Assembly: GCA_010909165.1 (NCBI GenBank)
Contig: MU008159.1
Location: forward strand, 806,001-870,000
DNA from: Anthoceros angustus
Taxonomy: Eukaryota; Plantae; Anthocerotophyta
Length of the DNA stretch: 64,000 bases
Direction: 5' to 3'
The translations under genes were made by a program, and so were the position numbers. The notes under the pieces were generated by a model. It was given only the letters and a program-made list of their open reading frames with translations, was not told where the DNA came from and searched no databases. This document shows, piece by piece, positions 39,439 through 56,585 of this stretch; the first letter of the stretch is position 1, and every line of letters starts with the position of its first letter.

Positions 39439-40227
39439 GTGTGTCGTTCAAGAAGGTGGATATGGATTTTCAAAGCATAAACTTAGAACATGAAATGTTG
39501 GAACAATCGTCTAAGAAGAAGATTAGAATTAGATAGCTAGTTTGCGATTCCTGGTTGGACCTCAATTGAGCCCAACCTATCATAGCTCAATGTAGTATAG
39601 CTCAATGTAATAGTAATATATTGACGTGTTATAATGCACAAATGTTCTGCATAAGTGTATTATTACGCTCATGTCTTGCAACAAAAATAATCAACCAAAA
39701 GTGCTACGAACTCATATCTTGCACTAATCGATAGTCATAAATTAAAAATCATATGTTAGTTATAAGAAAATAACTCAAAATTAAATGATTGATTGTCCAG
39801 TAAACGAAAGATCAAATAAAAAGGGGAATGCAAATGTACATGACATTACAAAATTACCTTCGTTCATACCAATGAAGATAATATTGTACTTGTTGAGTTT
39901 AAAATATGTTTGCCCAATGGTTTAATTTGAAAAATTTTTCCTACAATATTTTCGCATACACGCGCCATTCGAGCTTGGTTATCCAATTCGTTGTGCAGAA
40001 AGGGGTTATGGCTAAAATCCCGTCTTCTTTTGCGCGAAAACGCGCATTCGCTTTTTTTGAGAGAGTTTGCTAATTTAAATGTGGTGTTCAAATCTGCGAT
40101 ACCACTACCTGCATGTTCAGCTGAACTTTGGGCTAGTCGTCGAGAGCAGCAGATGTTCCTCGTCCGGTTGGCTCTGATCTTGGTGAATTGGTCATTGATA
40201 TAATTCATATTGTAGTCAATCCGGGCT

Positions 40228-41092
40228 ATGAGCCTTAGTCACATCATGTGGCAGCTACAGGCCTTGAGTCCAAGCAATGGAAGGATGCTATATAGTCAGA
40301 ATATGATTTCTAACAAGACATGGGAGCTTTGCAAATCCCCTCAGGGGAGGAAAATTGTGACAAGCAAGTGGGTCTTCAAGCTGAAATATAGAGCTGATGG
40401 TTCCATTTCCCATTATAAGGCAAGGTTCGTCGCTCGTGGTTTTTTGCAAGTTCCAGGCTTGGATTATCACGATACCTTTTCTCCTTGGAGAAAAGATATA
40501 TCGAGATTTGGGCTTCATTAAGTCTTTAGCAGACTCTAATGTGTATTTGCTTTAGGATGACGCTGGTTATGTCATGTTGGCCTTGTACGTTGATGACAAC
40601 ATTGTTCTTGGTACCAACCTGCCAAACATTGAACGAGTTAAGTCCCTACTATCAGGAAGATTTGATATGGTGGATGTAGATGAGTTGTCTTATTGTCTGG
40701 GCATTGAAGGAGCAGTCACCAAAGACCGAGGCTGAGAGAAGTGCAATGGTTAATGTGCCATACTCACAGTTGGTTGGGTCTTTGATATTTTGTTCCAATC
40801 ATACACGTGCTGATGTTTCCTTGCCAATCAGCATGATCTTCCAATTCTTGAAGGCCCCTGGACAAGTTCATTGGTCAGCAGCAAAATACATCTTGCGATA
40901 TCTGAAAGGCACTAGCACACATGGCATACACTACTCGAAACAGACTATGGCTGAAGAGGGACTTACTCTGGTGGGCTACTGTGATGCCGATTGGGTATCA
41001 GACCCAAACACGAGGAAGTTCGTTTCGGCCTGGGCTTTTCTGCTTGCAGGTGATGTTGTTACCTGGTCATCTAAAAAGCAATCCACAGTGTC
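40228..41092 (+). pseudogene. Ty1/Copia RT and start of RNase H (internally deleted), interrupted at 41093
   Basis: KWVFKLK...[69 protein letters not shown]. Confidence 0.92.
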
Positions 41093-42214
41093 TGTGGACA
41101 AGGGAAGAACGGTAGACTCCCCCTTAGGAAGGTAATAGGAGTATTTTTTTTTGTTTTCTTTAGTATTCGATGTGGGGAATAAGGCGGTAAAAAGGGTAAT
41201 AATGACAATTTGGATTACGACGGAGAAGGGAAGGGCGAACCTAGTGGTCCGGACTCGGGGAGAGGCGGACACAGTCCGGACTCGGAGAGAGCGGACCCGG
41301 TGGTCCGGACTCTGGAGGAAGAGGCGGGCTTGGTCGAGGTCCTGACCACTTTTGGGTTGATGCGCCGTTACACTTGCATCCTTGAGCCCGACTAACGCGA
41401 GTCACAGTCACCGGGCGGACTACTCCAGAGAGACTAATCCAAGTTCTGGTGACGGACCCTAACGCGTGGTGGTGAGTGCAGGTGTGGAGAACTCGGGATC
41501 CACCTCTTCCGGGCGGGATCTCGGCCGGAGTTGAGGCGGGCGTTAGCGAACCCGGAAGGCGTGTAGGCATGGGTGGGCGGCAGGGAATGCGAGAACACGA
41601 TAATATTCATACCGTGGAATAAGCGAGAGCGGCTTTTGCAATGAATAAAGCTGAAACCGGCGGGAACATGGGAGCAGCGCTGATCTGCCATTTTCCAAAA
41701 AATGCTTCAAAATTACAGTTGCTTTGTGTGCGGGGAGGCGGGATAATGTCATGACATAGGCTGGAAAAGGGATATACAACCTCGATGGGCACACATTTGC
41801 CTTGAAATAATGCCCATACATGACTTTCTTTGGTGGCGTGAAGAGGGCAGAGAGGCCTCTTGCTATTCATTCAGTACGTAAAGGGTATATGATTTTGGAA
41901 AAACCGTTTTAATGAGGGAGTAATAACTATTGGAGATGACAATGAAAATTCAACATGCAGTAGTGCAAGTCCCTGTTTCCATCTTCCAGAAATCAAGACA
42001 TGCAATTGCCGTTTCCATGCCTCTGGTGTGTGTTTTGTACCTGTCGAGTCTCACCTGCTTCATGGATGGGTGCTATCAAAGAAAAAACAATCTGGCAAGG
42101 GGAACAAAAGTCTCCAGAAGAGTGAGGAGATTGACTTACCTTAGAGAGAACTTTTGGACGCATGGACTCGAAATTCCGCCTTGACAAACATCGAAACATA
42201 TGGATATTGAAGCG

Positions 42215-42815
42215 GTATTGTCAATGGGCGCGGCATGCGGCGCCTCCATATCTTCTGCGGTAGAAACAAGTGACTTACCTTGCAGAACTCGTGGACGCAT
42301 GGTCCCGCGAAATGCCGCCGACAAGCGTTGTAACATATGCGAGTGGTATCGGTGTAAGCGAGGCGCGGCATGCAGCGCCTCCTACCGCCTACAAAGTGAC
42401 TTACCTTGGAAAGAACTAGGGACACATGGACCGCGAAATGCCGTCCCATCGACAAGCGTTGAAACATATGAGGAGTATGCGGGCTAGGGTATTGTCGGTG
42501 GAGGCCCCGGCATGCCGGTGCCTCCACTATCTATATTTTCTACAAACGGTAGAAACAAGTGACTTACCTTGAACTCGTGGGCCATGGCCCCGAAATGCCA
42601 TCCCTTCAAAAACGTGTAAACACATGAGGAGTGAATCGTGTAGGGGTGGGCGGTGGGCGCGGCATGCGGCGCCTCTGCTAAACAAGTGACTAACAAGTGA
42701 CGAACTAGGGAACACATGGACCCGCGAAATGCCATCCCATGTGACAAATGTTCAAACATATTAGGAGTGAACAAGCTAGGGTATTGTCAATGATGGCGCC
42801 AGATGCGGCGCCACG
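42215..42815. repeat. About five degenerate ~130-150-bp subterminal repeats inside the transposon
   Basis: Recurring blocks GCGGCATGCGGCGCC, ACAAGTGACTTACCTTG and CATGGACCCGCGAAATGCC. Confidence 0.75.
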
Positions 42816-43171
42816 GAATTTTTGGAAGACAACGGTAGACCACGTAAAAGCATGGACCCGTGCGCCTTCATTACATAGCGACGTAAAAGCGTGCGACCGT
42901 TCAGCCAACCTATCTAGTAATCACGGCCGAGTATGAAACTCGGGCAACATACGCTAACTCTATCGTGAAAACAAAACCCTAAAATCTCTAGTCTTGGGAC
43001 ACCGAATTCCTTCGTCAACCAAAGGACATCCATCATCCACTTCATGGTCACATCCTCCTCTCCTGCGAGATAAGGTCGGTGATTCATTCTATCTCGAATA
43101 GCCTTCTTGCGGAGCGTAAAGGTGCTTTCTTGCATTGAGGTTGAACCCATAATAGAGAATAATAGTCTTAT

Positions 43172-45768
43172 TCACAAATAGTTTATGAATGTTTTTGGGT
43201 AAATTTCTCTTTCCCACTCTCTTCCCATTTCGCGATCGTCGATTGTCTGGTCCTCTAACAAAGAACTCCTCAACATATTTCCCTTCAAAAGCATCGTGTG
43301 CTCAGTCTGCAGTGGACCATAAGAAATGGGTTCGCAATCAAGTCTCGCTTTCCACCTTCCCAATCGAAGCCACATTATGTGTATCTCCGAGCATGGAGTT
43401 GCAATGAACATGCCCTTCCTTATCTCTTTGACATCTCCATTCATCCTTTCTATTTCTTGATGTTGTCGACTTGCATTCGTGAGCTCCCAAATACATATCC
43501 CGTTGAGGAACTTCTCTTAGTAATGCTTCATCAAGCACAACCTCCTCCGGCACTTGAAGTGGCGGCATGGCCTCCACCTCTTCTCTGTACCACCTCCACG
43601 GTTGTTTAAGCACTAGAGCAATATTGTTCTCCACAATAGTGGCAATTCCTTCTGGTCGACCCAAAACAACCTCCACCACACCCTCCGATGGCGTGATATA
43701 CGTCGCCAAGTTCGATAAGCCATGCTTCAAGTGCCACACTGGTTGGTGAAAGACCTCCATCTTGACCCTTTTGTCTCGCCTTTAGCGGCATGAGGGGAGT
43801 GGGGCGTCCGGTGGTTGATGGAACAAATTTCAAAATTCCAACCCATCTTGATTCCCATTGAGGGATGTTGAGTCCGCTTACTTGAATGACCGTAACTTGA
43901 CCTCGGTCCCCGCTCCTCTCTCGTGATTTTAAATTGATGTTGGAAGGAAAGATTATTCAAGCGGTTCACTTTGCCTTGTGCATATCCTCTCGTCCCCTTC
44001 TTAATGGGCCATACATAAGACCGAAAATCTGCCACCTCATTACTTTAACTTGCGTTGGGGTGAAAGCTGTCAAAATCTCCAAAGTGTATCAATAAGCGCT
44101 TCTTTGTGCCTAAGAAGCTTCGAGAAACAAGAAAACATTTGATCAACGATCATGGGTATGACCAACCAATAGGAACCCAACCTTTATTTTAACGACACGA
44201 AGGTCGATGAGCATATTTAGGTGCGAATAGTAGCTGGTTCTTGTTCTCGCGGCAAGTATTATCAAGTGAGGTAAAGAACTTTAGGAAGCACCCTTCGTAA
44301 GAAAATATGACATCACAATTATGGATGGAGAGTTATTCGTTGCGATTAGCGTAGTGTAAATATGCCCGCCTTGAAAGTGTAATTATGTATCATACATCCC
44401 ACCACATGAACATTAATAAGTGATGCCTCGCCAACTCTTTGGGATAACGGAGGAAATGAGGGAGCTCTGTCTTCTTCCGTCCATGCCATCGATAGCAAGT
44501 CGCATATACTTGTGGGGCTGACTATAACTTTTGGACCGATGTTTTGCTTTGTCTCTCTCATTGCTTAGTCGCACTGTGATGCCAAAGCTCCTTCGTAAAC
44601 CTCTGCAAAAATGGAGACGACACAGTATTATATCGAAGATTGTTGCACAACCGTCTACACCTTAACATGAACATGGGTGCGGTTAATCTCTGGGGGGCGC
44701 CGGCATGCCCCTCCCGACATGCGGAAAAGCTTTGGGGGCACGCCTCCGCCCCCGAGGCGCTGAGGCGGCTGCCGGCCTGGTGCATGTCTTGATAAGGGTC
44801 TGGGCCCCGACAATGGAAGCACTCTTCGCCTACACCGCAACCTATGTGAGTCTTGCACATTGGTATCTACATTGCCACACCTCTCACGACAAGTGAGGCA
44901 CCTTTAAGCACTGGTGGCCACATATGCATATACACTCCGCAGCAGACATGTAAAGGCGATCATGCATCCTTCCGCAAAAATGGTTCTTAGAAACTATGCA
45001 CATCCCAAAGCAGGATATGAAGAACAAACCTTGGTACGCTCTGCCGGTGTTCGGATGGTGCGCTTGATCCTTCACATAAAGAGCAAGTGGAAAACCTATT
45101 AGACTTTGGAATCCTAACCTTGGAAGTTGGTCCTCCAGGGTCGGGAAAATAGGGATCGACACGAGCGCATACTAGACCGTGTCATATCCGGGCCCGGATC
45201 TCCAACTTTGAGAACGTGTCCCAGTGGAACACATCAACGTTTGGCCTTCCGCCATCACTTGAAAAGCTATCCATCCGAACGGCTCCCGATCGTGTGTAGA
45301 TGGTTGTCGCGGATTCACTCTTGACCCATCCCACGGTGCATTGCATAACACCCTGCTCTTCAACTCCTCGTACCTCTCTGAGCCGATGCAGTATACTCTT
45401 GAAAAGCTTGCAAACAACACCGAATGCGCGTCGCCCCCATTATATGCGTGATGACCTTGTCCTTTTCGGTGGCCTGTAAGTCCACGACCAGGAGGGACTG
45501 AAGAAATGTCTCTTGCTCTGCCCTCCCCATTCGCAGAAAACGATAACGTTGCTCATGGAAATTGGCCTTAGACATTGACTGGATGCATTGCTTGTTGCAG
45601 CATGGCTTCCAGAAGTCCGCTGTGACGACGTCGGAGTCGCTCTTCGACAAAGGAACTCCACTTGCCCACCTTCTCTGAACCACGGATTGCATGTCCCGTG
45701 GCGCCACAAATGTTTCGCCGGTGGTTTGGGGTGGAATGACCGTGGGCGGTCGCCTTCCTCTGTCTCAC
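43172..45768 (-). pseudogene. Sola/DUF7869-like DDE transposase, frameshifted in this sequence
   Basis: Across frames: CCNKQC...EQETFLQSLL...RCCLQAF; KVRIPKSNRFSTCSLC; YMRLAIDGMD; (DN)..RENKNQ; KVGFLLVGHTH.. (D...DN..ENKN...GHTH pattern); C-terminal EIRKGMFIA region. Confidence 0.75.
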
Positions 45769-46099
45769 TAAAGGTGCATCGGACGAGGGGTTTCAGAACA
45801 CCCTCCTTTCCTCAATTGGAAACAAACCCGGCCTTGGCAGTGCGTGGGAACTATTCGGTTCTTCATGCGCGGCCACTAGGACTCCGCTCCACGGTGAATA
45901 CAAATTGATGTTCCTTGGTGTTAGGAACACCGAGGAATCCTTGGTGAGGTCTGGACCCGCTTCCTCCAACCTTCATCGCAACGCGGCATTTGGTGACAGG
46001 GGGAACTGGCCTCTTGGTCATTGTTGGCATGCGTGAGAACTACCGCATTAACACACCGACCATCTACTACCCACAAGCCATTTGGAAATGCGGTGTGTT

Positions 46100-47360
46100 G
46101 TGCGGCATCATCGACAGGAGGATCGGACATTCAATCTTGCATTGCTTCCTTTTTCTTGCGGCGTCGACTCTCGGTTGATGCGATGACAGTCCTCCCTTCC
46201 GCAACATGAAAACGCCGAAGTTTAGGAGGAGAACATCAAGGGAACATTATTGCATGGAGTGCATTGGATACAACAAAGATCGCTCACTTCGCCCCATGCG
46301 GTGAGTCTCTGTAACATTCCGCGCGGCGATGCCACTTCACCCACGACACAAACGAAAGTGTGTTCTCCTGCAGGAAAAGGGTATAACGTCAAGCCACCAA
46401 CTTCAACGTCACCCAACGAGAAAGGCGCTATCAATGCACAAGTTCTAGACCTATAACGGCAAACAATCATTGCTGCGCCATCGTAATGGCGCCGCCTCCG
46501 CCAAAAGCGACACCACCATTAAGAGGTGTAGTTAGGACATTGTCCTAAAATGGAATTTATGCATTATGTACGTTCGCGAATCCATGGAGGTTACGGTGAG
46601 AATCGGGCAAATGAAGGGGAACCCTAACTTTTGTCCGGGCGTATAAGGTCTTTTAAAACCATTTCCCCACACTGTCCACAGGCACGAAACGGGCTTTACG
46701 TCCCCTTCAACTTTGTGGACTGCATGCGGACTCCTGCGCGAGAAGAGGGAGTGATTCAACGCTTGCGGATGCGCGTGGGGCCTTTGAGGATCATCCCCAC
46801 GCAAGGAAGGAGGTGTTCTTCTCCCCAATCCGTTGCTTTCCACCTATAAAGTGAGAACTCTAATCGTGAGAATTCACCGGTTGATGCGCGTCCGCGTTCC
46901 TTGTGGCGAAATCATGGCATCGGGAGGGCTCTCCGAGCAAGAAGGACCTAGCGGCGCCTGCTTGAACCACCTTCCGAGATTGCGGCGAAGAAACCAAGAA
47001 GAAGGCGACTCGGAGGCGGAGGAAGTCGCGGATATGGCGGCGCGACAAGGACCGGTGGCGCCAGGCAGAAACAACAGCATCGGAGGCGATGAGGATGTGG
47101 GTGGGGCGAAGAAATCGAGCTCGGAATTCAGCAAAAGCCGGCACAACACGGGGAGGCGGGCAGCCACGAAGACAAGGAGGCTTGAAGGGGAAGAAAGCAA
47201 CCCGATCCATGCCTTCGCCATACAACTTGGAAGAAACTATGCTCATCAGCGCGACTAACTCAATCGATGCGATTAATTGTCTAGGGAAGGAGTGGTTTTG
47301 CAGCGGGCTGGATGATCTTGACCATATGGACACCGCTTACGTGGTTGAGGTTTGGACCAG
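46100..47360 (+). pseudogene. Trihelix/Myb-SANT-like ORF with coiled-coil tail inside the transposon (duplicate at ~48250-49520)
   Basis: Fragments KRCS*DIVLKWN..YVRE..RANEGEPN...PFNF resemble the GT-1/ASR3-type helix and loop; acidic/basic linker; tail LEETMLISATNSIDAIN; heavily frameshifted. Confidence 0.4.
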
Positions 47361-50300
47361 CTAAGCCAAATCAGCGAGCAAGAGTTGGCTGGGTTGTATG
47401 GGCAAGTCTGGATTTATGCATAGCAGGGCGGAATTGAGTCCTCCTTACAACAAAGCCACACCAATCGGATGAAATTCGCCCGGTGCGGAGGAGTTCAAGG
47501 TTATCACCGTGGGCCTTGGGATGTTCAAGCTTAAGAAGTGTTCCCCGGATGTCGACAAGCGCCTTGAGAGGCTAAGCAGAATCAACACGTATGGACGGGT
47601 TGGCTAACATTGTTTTGTGCTTGAATCGTGCTTTTCATTTCGCTTGTAGCGCATGTAGTAGTTGGCTTATGGGTTTTGTGTGTCAGCAGTGGGAGGGCTT
47701 TCTATAAGCAATCGTGTGCTTTTGTCACACGCGATCTATCGTGGACCACCGGAGAGAAATGAGCATCACGGCGAACAGGCAGCCCTCCCAAAATCACGAC
47801 GGAGGACCTCTCAGCAGCTCGAGGAGGAGGAGCTGGGCCCAAGATGAGCATGATGGACCATTGCCCGACATCCTTGGACAATCCGAAGATGATGGAAGAA
47901 GCGGGGATGACTTGGAAACCGAGGTTAGAGATGCAGAATTAATAATGGATTATGACATGCCTCGACTCTATGCTTGTGCCCACGGTCCCTTATAACCCGA
48001 CAGGCGCGGCATCTTGCGGCGCCCGACTCCATTCGGTGTGGAGTCCGCCAACCCCTCGGCCGGGCATGGGTATGGATGTGGCGGGAGCAAGGAAGAGGAG
48101 GGCGGCATGCGGCCTAGCAGGTGTGGAGTCCTCCCAACCCCCATGCAGGCATGTTTATGGATGTGGGGAGCAAGGGTGGGGCGCGGCATGCACGTGAGGG
48201 CAGAACTACCGCATTGCGACCATCTACTACCCACAAGCCATTTGGATGCGGTGTGTTGTGCGGCATCATCGGGAGAGGATCGGACGCATTCAATCTTGCA
48301 TTGCGTTCCTTTTTCTTGCACGTCGACTCGGTTGAAGCTGCGATGACAAGTCCTCCCTTCCGCAACATGAAAGCGAAGTTTAGCGAGAAGAACATCAAGG
48401 GAACATTATTGCATGGAGTGCATTGGATACAACAAATATCGCTCACTTCGTCCATGCGGTGAGTCTCTGTAACATTCCGCGCGGCGATGCCACTTCACCC
48501 ACGACACAAAGCGAAAGTGTGTTCTCCTGCAGGAAAAGGGAAATATAACGTCAAGCCACCAACTTCAACGTCGCGAAAGGCGCTGGTGCGCTCAATGCAC
48601 AAGTTGTAGACCTATAACGGCAAACAATCGGTGCGCACGCCATCGTAATGGCGCCTCGCCAAAAGCGACACCACCATTAAGAGGTGTAGTTAGGACATTG
48701 TCCTAAAATGGAATTTATGCATTATATGCGTTCGCGAATCCATGGAGGTTACGGTGAGAATCGGGCAAATGAAGGGGAACCCTAACTTCTTGTCGGGCGT
48801 ATAAGGTCTTTTAAAACCATTTCCCCACACACATCCCCACGACGGCGGGCTTTCGTCCCCTTCAACTTTGTATGCGGACTCCTGCGCGGGCGAGAAGAGG
48901 AGTGATTCAACGCTTGCGGATGCGCGTGGGGCCTTTGAGGATCATCCCCACGCAAGGAGGTGTTCTTCTCCCCAATCCGTTGCTTTCCACCTATAAAGTG
49001 AGAACTCTAATCGTGAGAATTCTGGTTGATGCGCGTCCGCGTTCCTTGTGGCGAAATCATGGCATCGGGAGGGCTCTCCAAGAAGGACCTAGCGGCGCCT
49101 GCTTGAACCACCTTCCGAGATTGCGGCGGAAGAAACCAAGAAGAAGGCGACTCGGAGGCGGAGGAAGTCGCGGATATGGCGGCACAATCGCGGCCGACAA
49201 GGGCGGCAGCCAGGCGCCCGCAGCAAGCATCGCTGGAGGCGATGAGGATGTGGGTGGGGCGAAGAAATCGAGCTCGGAATTCAGCAAAAGCCCGGCTAAC
49301 ACGGGGAGGCGGGCAGCCACGAAGACAAGGAGGCTTGAAGGGGAAGAAGAAAGCAACCCGATCCTGCCTTCGCCATACAACTTGGAAGAAACTATGCTCA
49401 TCGTGGCGACTAACTCAATCGATGCGATTGTCTAGGGAAGGAGTGGTTTTGCAACAGAGGCGGGTATGGATGATCTTGACCATATGGACACAGGCAGGTG
49501 GTTCTGAGGTTTGGACCAGCTAAGCCAAATCAAAGCAAGAGTTGGCTGGGTTGTATGGGCAAGTCTGGATTGTCGCAACGGAATTCGAGGTCCTCCTTAC
49601 AACAAAGCCACCAAGCTGGATGAAATTCGCCCGGTGCGGAGGAGTTCAAGGTTATCACCGTGGGCCTTGGGATGTTCAAGCTTAAGAAGTGTTCCCCGGA
49701 TGTCGACAAGCGCCTTAGAGGCCAGAATCAACACGTATGGGTTGGCTAACATTGTTTTGTGCTTGTGCTTTTCATTTCGCTTGGTGCATGTAGGCGAGTT
49801 GGCTTATGGGTTTTGTGTGTCAGCAGTGGGAGGGCTTTCTATAAGCAAGCGTGTGCTTTTGTCACACGCGATCTATCGTGGACCACCGGAGAGAAATGAG
49901 CATCACGGCGAACAGGCAGCCCTCCCAAAATCACGACGGAGGACCTCTCAGCAGCTCGAGGAGGAGGAGCTGGGCCCAAGATGAGCATGATGGACCATTG
50001 CCCGACATCCTTGGACAATCCGAAGATGATGGAAGAAGCGGGGATGACTTGGAAACCGAGGTTAGAGATGCAGAATTAATAATGGATTATGACATGCCTC
50101 GACTCTATGCTTGTGCCCACGGTCCCTTATAACCCGACAGGCGCGGCATCTTGCGGCGCCCGACTCCATTCGGTGTGGAGTCCGCCAACCCCTCGGCCGG
50201 GCATGGGTATGGATGTGGCGGGAGCAAGGAAGAGGAGGGCGGCATGCGGCCTAGCAGGTGTGGAGTCCTCCCAACCCCCATGCGGCATGTTTATGGATGT

Positions 50301-51015
50301 GGCGGGAGCAAGGGAAGGGTGGGGCGCGGCATGCGGCGCCCGACTCCTTCATCCCAGCAGCGCCACCCTTCTACTATACCGGTGCTATGAGGCTATCGAC
50401 CCGTTGGATTGTCGGGAGGGCTGGAGGAAAGGCAAGCAGCGCGAGGAACGCAACACGACACCCAAGTCCGGATGCACTGGTAATTTGTTGGCGAACGAGC
50501 TAGTCATTTCCGATACAAGGCCGGGATCCGGAAAGAGGAAGCAGTCTTGATGCAAGAGGATCGGCCGAGCGAGAGAGTTTGGAGCCGAACATGGTAAAAT
50601 ACGGAAGAAAGCAAAAGACTACGAACTATGTCACCAGAGACATTCCAGTGTGGAGTCCCCGCCAACCTCAGGCATGGGTATGGATGTGGCGGAGCAAGGA
50701 AGAGGAGGGCGCGGCATGCGGCGCCTACTACGCGGTGTGGAGTCCTCCCAACCCCCATGCGGCATGTTTATGGATGTGGCGGGAGCAAGGGAAGGGTGGG
50801 GGCCGCATGCCCGCCTCTCCTCATCCCAGCAGCGCCACCCTTCTACTATACCGCAGGTGAGAGCTATCGACCCGGCCGTTGGATTGTCGGGAGGGCTGGA
50901 GGAAAGGCAAACGAAAGCGCAGTGAACAGAACCACGACACCCAAGTCCAGTGTGGTAATTTGTTGGCGAACGAGCTAGTCCGTACAAGGCCGGGATCCGG
51001 AAAGAGGAAGCAGTC

Positions 51016-53393
51016 TTGATGCAAGAGGATCCGAGCGAACGAGAGTTTGGAGCCGAACATGGTAAAATACGGAAGAAAGCAAAAGACTACAGGAACTATG
51101 TCACCAGAGACATTCCAGTGCACCTTTCAGCGGATGAAGAGAGGTTGGAATCTTCCTTCCACGAGGAGGACTACCTCACCCGAATTCGAGATGCGTATGC
51201 GAAGAAGGTGGTCCCGGTGGCTGGTGAAGCTGGAGAATCTGCGGCTGCCTCTTATCCCGGATGCGATTCGCGTGTGGATGAAGCGTGGACTAATTATCGC
51301 TCGCGTGATTGGAAGGGCCGAGTTGAGGAGGGCGTATTGCCCCTTTGTGCATGATTGATCCCAAGGAGTGTGATGATCTAGAGGACTGGTGGAAAAATTC
51401 AGGCAAGAAATACATCATGGGTGTGTGGCGGGAACCACACATTTGCGGCAATGCAACATTTGGCGGACATATCACCGATGAAAAGCGTTTCAAATGGATA
51501 GAGGCACATGTGTATTGTGGGTGACCACACGAAATGAGGGTTTTGGCGATCGATCACAATACAATGTCGACAAGCGGCGGAAGATGTCGTTCATAGAGCA
51601 AGTAAGATATCTCGAGATGAAGCGCTTATAGCCAAGCGGGATGGCGTGCATATGTCCATGAATTGGAAGTTCAACTGTATAAGGTATTGGGTCTTATCGA
51701 AGATGATGAAGGACGGAAGATGATGCCTACAAAGCGAACAAGGTTGACACAGACGCACATCTTGTGCATAGCGAAGTTGGAAGGAAGGGTATGGGAGAAT
51801 GTGGACAAAATTTTTGCAAAGTGGGAGGCTTGTGACTTGCAAGAAGAAACATGTGGCAGGATTGAGCAAAAGAGCAAAGGCAAGCGGAAAGCGGAAGAAA
51901 AGCGAAACAAGTTGAGGTATATTGGTGAAGCCAAGGAGATGCAGACAAAGCCATGGCGTTGCTTTCAAGGTATTCTGCGGGGAGGCGGGCAAATGCTTAT
52001 TAGTGCCACCGAGAAAGTTCTCACGCCTTATGGATTTGAAGGAATGTCGGATGAAATTATATTGCGCAAGAAATTGCATATCATCCAAGTGGCCATGGCG
52101 AAGCACTTAGGATGTTCATCTTTTGAGATGGTGAGGCAAGAGTACCCACAACATTCCACCGAAGTAGTCGCGAGTTCAGGCTTTCGAGGGAAAGGTATGT
52201 TATCATACTCTCTTGTTTCTTAGAACTTTATATGGTATAGGCGGGAGGAGGGAGGGAGGCGGCATGCGCCTCCTGTTGTCCTTCCGCATGCCCGCCCAGC
52301 AGGCGCCGGCTGCAGCGCAGCCAGGCGCCGGCATGCACCCCTGCTAGTAGGGGTTGCCGAGGAGGGCGCCGGCATGCGCGCCCCAAGTCTGCCTAGGCTA
52401 AGTGCGAGGGCGCGCGGCGCCTCGACATCGACTAATATTGACAAGCATCCTGTTTTTGTGCAGCAACAAAGACATTGAAGTCCTTACCAAGTGCCCCAAA
52501 ACTTTCAGCAGTTCATTTATGAGGTCAACACTTGGAAGGGCTTGGAGGATGAGCGCATGAGATAGAGACATTGAAGAGGATTGTTGCAATTTGTCCCCAT
52601 CGGAGAAAAAGTACGATGTCAGTTCATGCTCGAGATGTGCGGATATGCGAGGTTTTGTGAGGAAGAGGAGTTACTCTTTGCTTGTGATGGATGTCCCACG
52701 TGGATTCGAGAAGGGCCCAAAGGATGGAAGGTTTGATATTTGGCAAGTTGGTAATGTTTTGCATTCCTTCCATGACTTGAATCGGCGATTCGGGATGATC
52801 ATAATGCATGGTGTGGAAGATTCACATATTGTGCGGAGCCTATCGGAAGTGGTGCGGAGGGTGGTCTTGTTTCATTTGTGTGGACAAGACAAATGTCAAC
52901 AACGACAAGGGTGGGTTTGATACGGTGGAGTATATGCTTGGGGGGAAGAAAAGCTCGAGTTCTGGGCTGTCATGTTACCTAATGTTTTGGTGGCACTTTC
53001 AATAATGGTCGGTCGGTGATTGCCCACCATACGATTGTGAAAAGCGGTTTATCATTCACTTGACAAACTTGTTATGTCCCTACCGGCCTTTAGGTTTGAT
53101 GATGAAGCTTATCAAGACATTCTCAAGGAAGGGTGGATATTGGATGCATGTGCGGTAGTGGGTCATCTTTAATGGCTGCCTTGTTGTCGGCGAAATTGTA
53201 TTTCTATCGAGGCGGACAAGAGGTGTGCGAAATTCATTCCACAGTGTACATGGATATAATCTTGCGGATGCGGAGGAGGAGGCGACACATGAGCCGCATC
53301 GTCGTGGTCCATCTCAATTGGGCCAAGGAGGTTTGCGTCGGTGAGAAGGATATTGGGAAGGCTCAAATTGTGCCTCTAGGGTCGAGCGAATGA
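51016..53393 (+). pseudogene. ParB/Srx-like domain fused to a beta-class amino DNA methyltransferase (N6A/N4C type), one intron (~52196-52464); frameshifted in this sequence
   Basis: ParB-like VCGGNHTFAAM (51421-51453); catalytic motif IV-like YSLLVMDVPRG (~52670-52704) precedes CPYRP.GLMMKLIKTFSRKG and motif I ILDAC.GSGSSLMAA (~53138-53180), then RNCISIEAD; donor AAG|GTATGT and acceptor TGTGCAG. Confidence 0.75.
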
Positions 53394-54364
53394 AAGAAAG
53401 GACTGAGACCCCGCGATGAGGGCACAGACACTAGAGGTCAGATGGCACACCTGGGGTTGGGAAGGAAGACGACGCCCAGCGATGATGGTCATGACTCTGG
53501 AGAGACAGATGAAGAACGCCCGAGAAACGCCACCGTAGTTCCCGATAGTGAAGCCGGTTTGTGTGCGGTTGAATCTTGGACCGTGAACTTCCTTAGGTGG
53601 CTAGAACGTTTTCTTTGAATCAGATCGTATGGGCCGTTGTCTTTGGAGTGGATGACACGCCGGATCTTCTAGTAGCAAGTTGTTCTGTGTCTGGCCATGA
53701 GGCCATTTTTGAATACATCTGAGCGGACGCACTCTACTTATAACTGAGCATTGCCGCTTGTCCGCAAGCATCCCTGCACCCTAGCACCTTCATTGCAGAC
53801 CCCTTTGAACACGAGTTCGAATGTCAATCACAATGATTGCTTGGCACGGGCGCATGTGCTTTCGAAGAGACGTGTTTGGAGCGAATTAGTAACTGTATGA
53901 AAAGTACCAAGCGGCGGCAATTTTTCCATAACCGGCGTACATTATTCCGCCGGTATGAATATTATCGTGTTAGAGGTGTTGCAACCCACACCCACCGGAC
54001 CCGCAATTTCAACTAGGCACCCTTGTAATGAGGACAAGAGAGAAAGAGTAAAGGCCAAGGGAGAGAGAGAATTTTGGGAAGAGAACGGGTCCTTAAACAT
54101 TTGGACAAACTGGGCCTGTACGGTGATGAACCGGTGAGAAGCAACAGAACCGTGAGGTTAACCAGGTCCTAAAGATTTAGGCAAGCGCCCGATGCCGGCG
54201 TAGCATCGTGGTTAGTAACGTAGTGAGCGACGGGGGTAAGATAGGCAAGTTGAGTAGGAAAACGCAAGCGAGCGGAACAGTCAGTCTCTTGGGAATGGAC
54301 CCCATACCACAACGACACGGGATCGGTGCACACCCGGCTGGCCGTCAGCAAAAGTAGTTCCACA

Positions 54365-54720
54365 ATGTCATTGTCCTCAACTGAGGCAGAATATTCTGCT
54401 CTTACACAAGCTGCGAAGGAGGGCATCTGGTTGAGCAGACTTATGAAGGACATGGGACTGGAGCAGACTCAACCAACATTGATCTACTGAGACAATCAAT
54501 CAGCACTTACCCTTGCACAGAATCCAGTTTTTTATGCCTGAACAAAATACATTAAGGTCCATCACCATTTCATTCGTGATGCAGTTTCTTCAGCTCAGAT
54601 CTGTCTTGAGTATATTCCTACAGGATCTAATGCAGCTGACCTGCTTACTAAAGCTCTTCCTAAGGTAAAATATAATCTGCTTAAGGAGATGCTTGGAGTC
54701 TTAGATTCCAACAGTCCTCA
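54365..54720 (+). pseudogene. Remainder of the Copia RNase H split by the nested insertions
   Basis: SLSSTEAEYSALTQAAKEGIWL...DNQSAL.LAQNPVF...IKVHHHFIRD...ADLLTKAL. Confidence 0.92.
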
Positions 54721-55204
54721 TCTTTTTTCTAGTCATCAAAATTTTGAACTAGTAGTGAGAACCTTTTGCATCTTTTGAATCTTGAGACATTTGGCGTGGG
54801 CCCATTTCCAAGTGTAGCCCACTCTCGCACTGCACGCTGATCAAGAGCATTAGGTCAACGAAGATATTATCGTCCCAATGTCTGAGAAACAAAGTCTTGT
54901 AGGATTCCCAAAGCGAGAGTATTATCTTAGGATTGATTGGTATGAGTGAAAGGTTGGTGTGTAAACAAGTTTGCACCAAGAATCACAGCAGGAGCCCTAA
55001 AAACTCTAAAACATGTTCATACACATGCTGGTCGTGAGAATCACCTTCTTTTAGAAAACCTCATAATTAGATAAAGTTTAAAATCAAATTGTGCCTAGGT
55101 AAATAAGACCTAAACTCTTCAAAATAGCCGTTTTCAATGTGGATGTAATATGGCTTACCATTAATAATGGGGCTGGGCGCATCGGCCTTCCTTGTGTGAG
55201 GTCG

Positions 55205-55400: not shown

Positions 55401-55581
55401 GAGGTGGTATATGGTTTTGTCGGGTTGCTTTCAATTAGAGCATGCAGTTTTGTACTTGGTTTTTAGGTGTTTTTACAATGGTGATAATATAGCAATAAGG
55501 ATACCATTTGAACCAACAAAATGATTGGACAGGTATGTTGAACCAAGTTGATAAAACCTTGGACCATGGTCTGCCTAAGCT

Positions 55582-55745
55582 GATGACCTCTCGCGTGGCC
55601 TTCTCGCGATGACCTCTCGCGTGGCCTTCTCGCAATGACCTTTCGCGTGGCCTTCTCGCGATGACCTCTCGCGTGGCCTTCTCGCGATGACCTCTCACGT
55701 GGCCTTCTTGCGATGACCTCTCGGGTCGCCTTCTCGCGATGACCT
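55582..55745. repeat. 26-bp minisatellite (GATGACCTCTCGCGTGGCCTTCTCGC), about 6 copies
   Basis: Unit starts at 55582, 55608 and onward. Confidence 0.92.
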
Positions 55746-55818
55746 TTAGCATCGCCTTCTCCCAAGACTCCTCCACATATTCTCGAAAAACATCAAGAAT
55801 CAACACTATTGCTCAATC

Positions 55819-56585
55819 ATGGATGAGGCAATCAATAAGTACGAAGACTTTACCAGACAAGCCAAGGGACATCTCACAGCTGTGGAGAATGGAGAAGCCT
55901 TTGAAGACCAAGAGGATGACCTCGTTGCGGGTTCAGAGGAGCAACATGCCAAGGCCAGATTAAAGCACGACACCAACCTTATATGGAGTGAAGAAGCAAC
56001 AATGGTCCTGATAGAAGCCTATCATGAGATGCACCTCAAGCAAGGGACTCTCACCACAAACACTAAAATGAGGTTGTTGCTGAAGTTGGCAACAATTGTG
56101 GCCTTTCTTGTGTGACTGCCAAAAAGTGCAAGATGAAAATGGAGAATCTAAAGAAGCGATATCGAAAAGAGAAGGAGCAGAAAACAGCAACGAGGAGCAT
56201 CAATACCACGTGGCCACATTTCCATGCAATGGTAGATCTTTGCGACAAGAACCCAAAGTTCCGAGGGATTCTAGGTGCCCTGGATCCTGGAAAGTCAAAG
56301 CCTAAGGAAGGTATTGCCAACTCACCTTCAGATGCTGCCAGGAGTGGAACTTACTTAGTTGACTCTGAGCAAGCTTCTCAAGGTGATCCGCCTCATGCAC
56401 CTCAGCACGTAACTCCCGATGCTCATGAGACCACTGAAGAGCAGTGTGCAGAATCCCCAAGTAAGCCAAGCATTGAAGAACATGACAACATGTGCGATTC
56501 TGTACAGGGCAAAAAGGTCAAGCGTAGAAGGTCTTCTACTTCAGGAGTTGGAAAGGAAATTGCGGCAGGTAGCATGGGACAATGA
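55819..56585 (+). pseudogene. Trihelix (Myb/SANT-like DNA-binding) protein, one frameshift near 56070; resembles Harbinger ORF1-type proteins
   Basis: IWSEEATMVLIEAY...(W)EVVAEV...TAKKCKMKMENLKKRYRKEK...TWPHFHAMVDL is the canonical trihelix pattern. Confidence 0.78.

Follow-up and report, generated by a model that had tools for sequence, protein, structure and literature searches.

A damaged accessory gene with a methyltransferase-type C-terminal end in a DUF7869/Sola-like transposon of Anthoceros angustus

The window analysed here is a 64-kb stretch of the Anthoceros angustus genome (contig MU008159.1, positions 806,001 to 870,000), and all coordinates below count from its first nucleotide. 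Within it, 51016-53393 had been described, from the letters alone, as a transposon-borne gene for a ParB-like protein joined to a bacterial-type DNA amino-methyltransferase and split by a spliceosomal intron. The locus is a damaged or partly mis-assembled accessory-gene copy of a DUF7869/Sola-like transposon, of a kind that has been published, and its 53079-53256 segment is the genuine S-adenosylmethionine (SAM)-binding end of a bacterial-type beta-class DNA amino-methyltransferase. Translation of the + strand of 50900-53700 in three frames places every motif string where the sequence-only reading had put it. GGNH occupies 51427-51438, LLVMDVPRG is present with its DVPR at 52690-52701, and RPLGLMMKLIKTFSRKG, ILDAC, GSGSSLMAALL and RRNCISIEAD follow one another over 53079-53216. 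These strings are spread over three reading frames and never form one continuous frame.

The methyltransferase block (53079-53256, + strand) reads RPLGLMMKLIKTFSRKG x ILDAC x GSGSSLMAALL x RRNCISIEADKRCAKF and ends at a TAA stop at 53257. It unites a motif X with motifs I to III and undergoes three frame changes inside 60 nt, near 53135, 53152 and 53187. The motif X helix (P-x-x-L-x-x-x-L-I) and, after it, the SAM-binding loop of motif I (hh-D-x-F-x-G-S/x-G-T/S) are both recognisable. Motif I lies about 20 codons upstream of the stop, and the block is the extreme C-terminal end of the coding region. This placement fits the order expected of the beta class, in which motif IV comes first and motifs X and I close the protein.

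Read-through peptides of 75-95 residues, in which the letter X was placed at each frame break, were used for the profile searches. The only Pfam family matched by the motif X/I read-through is N6_N4_Mtase (PF01555; E 9.5e-6, 26.2 bits, profile positions 167-216 of 221). Two hidden Markov models (HMMs) were also built. One represents 15 diverse N6_N4 methylases of phages and E. coli, their family membership verified, and the other represents 119 ParB-methylase fusions of bacteria. Homologue searches that started from two profile seeds, E. coli YhdJ and a bacterial ParB-methylase, gave close bacterial relatives only. The read-through scores 28.2 bits against the first model (HMM columns 198-249), where the alignment line opposite the block is kPeaLlerlilassnegdvVLDpfmGSgtTgaaalklgRkfIGieineey. 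Against the ParB-methylase model it reaches 21.1 bits, versus at most 2.1 across 500 shuffles.

Since the frames had been picked freely in the sequence-only reading, a frameshift-tolerant alignment was run over both strands of the entire window. With the methylase HMM, 53079-53243 comes out at the top (49.6 versus 36.5 for the next place) and above all the maxima of 60 simulated 64-kb windows (mean 36.9, highest 42.1), which corresponds to a Gumbel P of ~3e-4. The block is again first with the ParB-methylase HMM (41.5 versus 35.5). In NCBIfam it weakly matches a DNA methyltransferase subfamily, PRK13699 and CcrM, and in the PDB its weak matches are to a TTHA0409-type methylase, DpnA and N4C methylases, besides artefacts from WD40 repeats. 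A metagenome scan with the motif I read-through retrieves 12 methylases, all bacterial, at 36-51% identity over 46-56 residues. The first rank in the window, the excess over the simulated windows and the agreement among Pfam, NCBIfam, PDB and metagenome searches thus establish the block as the genuine SAM-binding end of a beta-class amino-methyltransferase. The earlier recognition of beta-class wording at the C-terminal end is borne out, by the scan and by Pfam, for the motif X/I block only.

Upstream of the block the gene is broken into separate open frames, all on the + strand, and three of them are the longest stretches free of interruption. The first of them (50959-51351, 131 codons) precedes the ParB-like stretch, contains position 51016, from which the gene had been taken to start, and matches nothing in Pfam. 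A second (51621-52220, 200 codons) lies between the two domain candidates; Pfam, PHROG and homologue searches, including a word-based one, gave nothing for it. The third (52561-52917, 119 codons) carries the motif-IV-like LLVMDVPRG, and an exhaustive phmmer search of its product against 1.84 billion representative proteins returned two repeat-protein artefacts and nothing else. In the ESM Atlas feature search, the 119- and 200-residue pieces hit unrelated low-score clusters only. Altogether, the single-frame pieces have no relevant match in Pfam, PHROGs or the PDB, and the phage/E. coli methylase HMM finds only noise among all 2574 stop-free pieces of the window. A path through all motifs must cross in-frame stops at 51522, 52221, 52558, 52918 and 53017. 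As assembled, this copy is unable to encode the accessory protein, frameshifts and stops interrupting both genes of the element.

The catalytic motif IV of such enzymes, (D/N/S)-P-P-(Y/F/W), is absent from its candidate site. As the sequence-only reading had said, the tetrapeptide is D-V-P-R rather than DPPY, and it lacks both the second proline and the aromatic residue; its fourth position scores poorly against methylase profiles. The candidate lies about 130 codons upstream of motif I. A profile of the N-terminal half of the methylases, when confined to the 616 nt that precede motif I, lands on DVPRG, so that the position is consistent while homology is not demonstrable.

The ParB-like candidate (51351-51640, + strand) holds GGNH together with LAIDHNT..RKMSFIEQVRYL. 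It extends over three frames, requires four frame changes and contains the TGA at 51522. The succession YIMGV x GGNHTFAAMQHL ... LAIDHNT ... RKMSFIEQVRYL bears a by-eye likeness to the G-x-x-R or GERRxRA-type loop of ParB, followed by a helix with E-N..R. With a frameshift-tolerant ParB sub-model, 51389-51674, which lies on the strand of the methylase block and upstream of it, is first in the window, at a score (38.3 versus 36.5 for the next place) that is within noise. ParB-likeness of the N-terminal region is therefore unproven in this copy.

The gene is enclosed in a 12.4-kb element (41594-53971) bounded by terminal inverted repeats (TIRs). The left TIR (41594-41614) is AACACGATAATATTCATACCG, 21 nt that are 100% complementary to the right TIR (53951-53971), making a perfect 21-bp inverted repeat; the similarity extends to ~30 nt if one indel and one mismatch are allowed. 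Besides the accessory gene, the TIRs enclose a frameshifted transposase-like gene of the DUF7869 type (42900-45900, - strand). The two genes thus lie on opposite strands and point away from each other. In the transposase-like gene, DGMD, DNTCRENKN and FLLVGHTHD..IVDQMFS are found in three frames. Single-frame pieces have no match in Pfam, whereas the read-through of the conserved core (44073-44278) matches PF25273, DUF7869 (E 1.8e-16, 60.7 bits for a cut-off of 26).

A Ty1/copia RVT_2 domain (40216-40732) lies directly upstream of the element, and the C-terminus of copia pol picks up again beyond the right TIR, at 54254-54775. Because copia parts are present on both sides, the TIR element is nested in a plant retroelement. 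The claim that the gene is no bacterial contaminant is upheld, such contamination being excluded by the context of TIRs, DUF7869 gene and copia. The idea of a plant DNA transposon carrying its own DNA-modifying "writer" holds in part, as the TIRs, the DUF7869 gene on the - strand and the methyltransferase-like gene on the + strand are all in place; the writer function is not supported, and the copy is broken. Within the copia element itself, 40216-41132 shows RVT_2 matches and then an RNase H-type motif, WSSKKQSTVS, while SLSSTEAEY ... YIPTGSNAADLLTKALP resumes 13 kb later. The copia parts do not reach the TIRs directly: ~460 nt on one side and ~290 nt on the other are unexplained and may contain a further nested element.

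Between the two genes lies a 2.15-kb tandem duplication (46226-50540; copies 46226-48384 and 48385-50540). Its copies differ by many small indels, with an indel/substitution ratio that varies with the gap costs and is for that reason suggestive only. After it comes a 475-nt repeat (50400-50900), of which 50573-50622 is the same as 51041-51090, the first 50 nt of the claimed open reading frame. The element is also rich in GCATGC, which occurs 17 times where its own composition predicts 7.6 ± 2.6, and at 0.19 per kb outside it. Most of these sites are inside an extended palindrome, GGAGGCGCsGCATGCsGCGCCTCC. Four such palindromes of ~24 bp, spaced by ~140 nt, form a left subterminal array (42233-42667); several others lie between the genes and four are inside the candidate intron. 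The sites in palindrome context are at 42233, 42368, 42510, 42662, 44703, 48105, 48186, 50242, 50329, 50714, 50805, 52262, 52286, 52331 and 52372.

The candidate GT-AG intron (52195-52463, + strand) is 269 nt long, has 61% G+C and is placed at the junction between the end of one open frame and the start of another. Its donor is AAAG/GTATGT at 52194/52195, a branch-like CTAAT is found at 52432, and the acceptor is TGTTTTTGTGCAG/C at 52463/52464. The splice signals proposed earlier are thus canonical and one base off the figure given then. On the other hand, removal of 52195-52463 as assembled does not restore the frame: it joins frame 0 to frame 2, which meets a stop 19 codons on, and the frame of motif IV needs one further shift even after splicing. 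An origin of the intron as a copy of the upstream repeat module was considered and is ruled out, as blastn finds no similarity between it and the rest of the window. The intron is plausible but unproven.

One DNA run and one RNA run of the organism were compared with 50950-54000. In all, 133 short-read contigs matched, 44 of them at 99% identity or above, 44 at 95-99%, 32 at 90-95% and 13 below 90%, and these four similarity classes indicate that the family is multi-copy. The window differs from the contigs at 62 indel places versus 21 substitution places, the indels being mostly of 1-2 bases. In five near-identical contigs that were listed, there are 25 gaps versus 8 mismatches over 862 nt, and in 11 of the 12 indels listed the reads have bases that the window lacks. 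Around GGNH, sister contigs add TA after 51426 and G after 51483, which yields exactly the frame path that the sequence-only reading had taken. This predominance of indels suggests assembly error, and part of the frameshift damage is probably of that origin rather than decay. No contig of the RNA run matched and no splice joint was seen, so that the copy is without sign of expression, and its intron without sign of splicing, in this one run.

It appears, with a probability that we put at roughly three in four, that a cut-and-paste transposon of 12.4 kb has in 51016-53393 its second, accessory gene, that the encoded protein has the cofactor-binding half of a beta-class methyltransferase at its end, and that this copy is damaged. 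The gene would be transcribed away from the DUF7869-type transposase gene on the other strand. Its product would comprise, ahead of the cofactor-binding half, an N-terminal region with a by-eye resemblance to ParB/Srx and a putative catalytic strand with D-V-P-R. According to the published model, which is the likeliest for the family, the protein would bind the DNA of its own element, for which the ~24-bp palindromes centred on GCATGC, at the left end, between the genes and in the intron, are candidate sites. The SAM-binding fold might then methylate the DNA of the element or, motif IV being non-canonical, do no more than bind or shield it.

Several observations weigh against this interpretation. 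The Pfam score of the motif X/I block, although N6_N4_Mtase is the sole family found, falls 0.5 bit under the gathering cut-off (26.2 versus 26.7), and the match covers ~50 residues. The window holds 139 other places that match or exceed the 5.3 bits of the motif-IV-like 11-mer, and with the N-terminal-half profile p is 0.29 for the motif IV region, 0.09 for motifs IV to VIII and 0.15 for the whole half. LLVMDVPRG, which had been offered as a motif IV, is accordingly at chance level, and the proposal of an epigenetic writer loses with it a sole catalytic candidate that is indistinguishable from chance and has no aromatic residue. The 95-residue ParB-like read-through is unmatched in Pfam (E<=10), NCBIfam, the PDB and the HMM of 119 ParB-methylases, and hhalign assigns it a probability of 0.2%. 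The ParB/Srx-like assignment is thus left, after searches with PF02195 and other profiles, with the 2-bit margin of the window scan.

To these points are added others that concern the element and its relatives. The transposase is placed by its DUF7869 match alone, which makes membership of Sola1 a candidate only. The TIRs are flanked by CGAG and AGAG, identical at 3 of 4 positions, which is not a clean target-site duplication. The short-read run is shallow and leaves uncovered both the intron (52174-52479) and the frame breaks around motif I (52888-53295). Neither the homologue search with the 200-residue product, nor the phmmer search among 1.84 billion proteins, nor scans of viral contigs retrieved a eukaryotic relative; the viral-contig scans, for which the queries were the core of the transposase and the read-through of the ParB-like stretch, gave nothing at all. 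The domain architecture consequently rests on one damaged copy and on the literature.

One alternative concerns what the fold does. The family protein may not be a DNA base methyltransferase at all, having kept the fold as a SAM- or DNA-binding module, that is, as a transposon regulator or DNA binder in which D-x-P-R has replaced (D/N/S)PP(Y/F/W). The only motif IV candidate, with its poor fourth position, and a motif I that is still well conserved would agree with such a role, but the motif IV assignment on which the argument turns is itself unproven; we regard this as quite possible, though short of probable. A different question is whether the gene is broken in reality. If the frameshifts were mostly indel errors of long reads, the gene could be intact or nearly so in the genome, and possibly a working copy. 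Indels do dominate the comparison with short-read contigs, the near-identical ones included, nearly all of those listed are bases that only the reads have, two such insertions mend the path through GGNH, the TIRs are perfect, and the internal tandem copies likewise differ by many small indels. However, the five in-frame stops are substitutions, not indels, the transposase is likewise broken, and some of the indels supported by reads would disrupt the 200-codon frame. Moreover, the contigs possibly derive from other copies, the RNA run has no match, and under stricter gap costs substitutions exceed indels between the tandem copies. An intact gene is accordingly unlikely, and a damaged copy is still the preferred reading.

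Two further explanations were weighed. The motifs might be a chance resemblance assembled from three frames and without methyltransferase homology, as could be argued from the silence of the single-frame pieces and from the freedom with which frames were chosen. This is very improbable, since a frame-free scan of the window, set against 60 simulated windows, still picks 53079-53243, the Pfam search with the read-through finds N6_N4_Mtase alone, and the transposon type has been published as the carrier of such a gene (PMC12477816). That bacterial or phage DNA contaminates the assembly is suggested by the nearest sequence matches, which are bacterial methylases. Yet their identity is just 36-51% over ~50 residues, TIRs of eukaryotic type, a DUF7869 gene and the copia nesting surround the gene, and the family is multi-copy in the DNA run of the organism. 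The probability of contamination is negligible.

The closest known system is Sola1-1_Ec32 of Ectocarpus, a 21.5-kb element with a gene for a ParB-like and N4C/N6A methyltransferase protein opposite the transposase strand (Dinatale et al. 2025, PMC12477816). Its describers, who cite Petroll et al. 2025, suggest for such proteins a role in binding and modifying the element that encodes them. Like Sola1-1_Ec32, the Anthoceros element is a large TIR transposon with an accessory gene opposite the transposase and a bacterial-type amino-methyltransferase fold at the C-terminal end of the product. The role proposed for Sola1-1_Ec32, binding and marking of its own DNA, is also the one proposed for the present family. 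The two differ in host, here a land plant, in size (12.4 kb versus 21.5 kb) and in coding capacity (~2.1 kb versus a protein of 1104 amino acids). Here, in addition, no ParB domain is detectable, motif IV reads DVPR, the copy is damaged and the transposase is known by DUF7869 only. The self-marking idea put forward in the sequence-only reading is therefore already in print, and the pairing of ParB with a methyltransferase is published for brown, green and red algae. Literature searches on Sola1 and ParB returned Dinatale et al. 2025 only, an algal paper, and found DUF7869 in no paper; the land-plant host may therefore be unreported.

The PF01555 methylases (CcrM, DpnA, TTHA0409) and the bacterial ParB-methylase fusions (PF02195 with PF01555, for instance a protein of 441 amino acids) share with the Anthoceros gene the motif X helix, the motif I loop and the C-terminal position of the block. 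The likeness is seen when RPLGL..LI...S..G.ILDAC.GSGSS..AA....R..I.IE.D is set against the bacterial kP..L...li..sS..gd.VLDpf.GSGtT..aA...gR..iGiE.d. Unlike these relatives, which have DPPY, the Anthoceros gene has no DPPY, its N-terminal half and ParB region do not align to the bacterial profiles, and it lies in eukaryotic surroundings and has a plausible intron.

Prokaryote-derived amino-methyltransferase folds are also present in other eukaryotic nuclear genomes. Marchantia MpDN4MT1a/b are host genes with a TSPPY motif and N4-methylcytosine (4mC) activity (bioRxiv 10.1101/2021.02.12.428880), and bdelloid N4CMT is a domesticated N4C methyltransferase, a single host gene that likewise has 4mC activity (PMC8885841). 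The Anthoceros gene resembles them in this origin of the fold. In contrast to these single host genes with (T)SPPY and demonstrated 4mC activity, it is the cargo of a multi-copy transposon, has DVPR and is read from sequence alone.

Transposons with a DNA-modifying enzyme of their own could mark or protect themselves, and they could be a route by which bacterial amino-methyltransferases enter eukaryotic genomes. What the present locus adds is one more, albeit damaged, copy in a land plant, a non-canonical D-V-P-R, and a set of palindromes, specific to the element, that may serve as binding or target sites. It could be imagined that a branch of the algal ParB-methyltransferase transposons is still active in land plants, with a D-x-P-R protein that recognises, methylates or shields its own palindromes and with a decay that is largely an assembly artefact. 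Taken as a whole, this picture is decidedly improbable. For the assembly itself, indel errors may account for frameshifts in high-copy repeats, and calls of pseudogenes in them need accurate reads.

Farther downstream, 55556-55789 is a tandem array of a 13/26-nt unit in 11 copies. It is adjoined by an open reading frame (56112-56582) that encodes a Myb/SANT-like domain (Myb_DNA-bind_4, E 2e-9). The array and this open reading frame may belong to another transposon.

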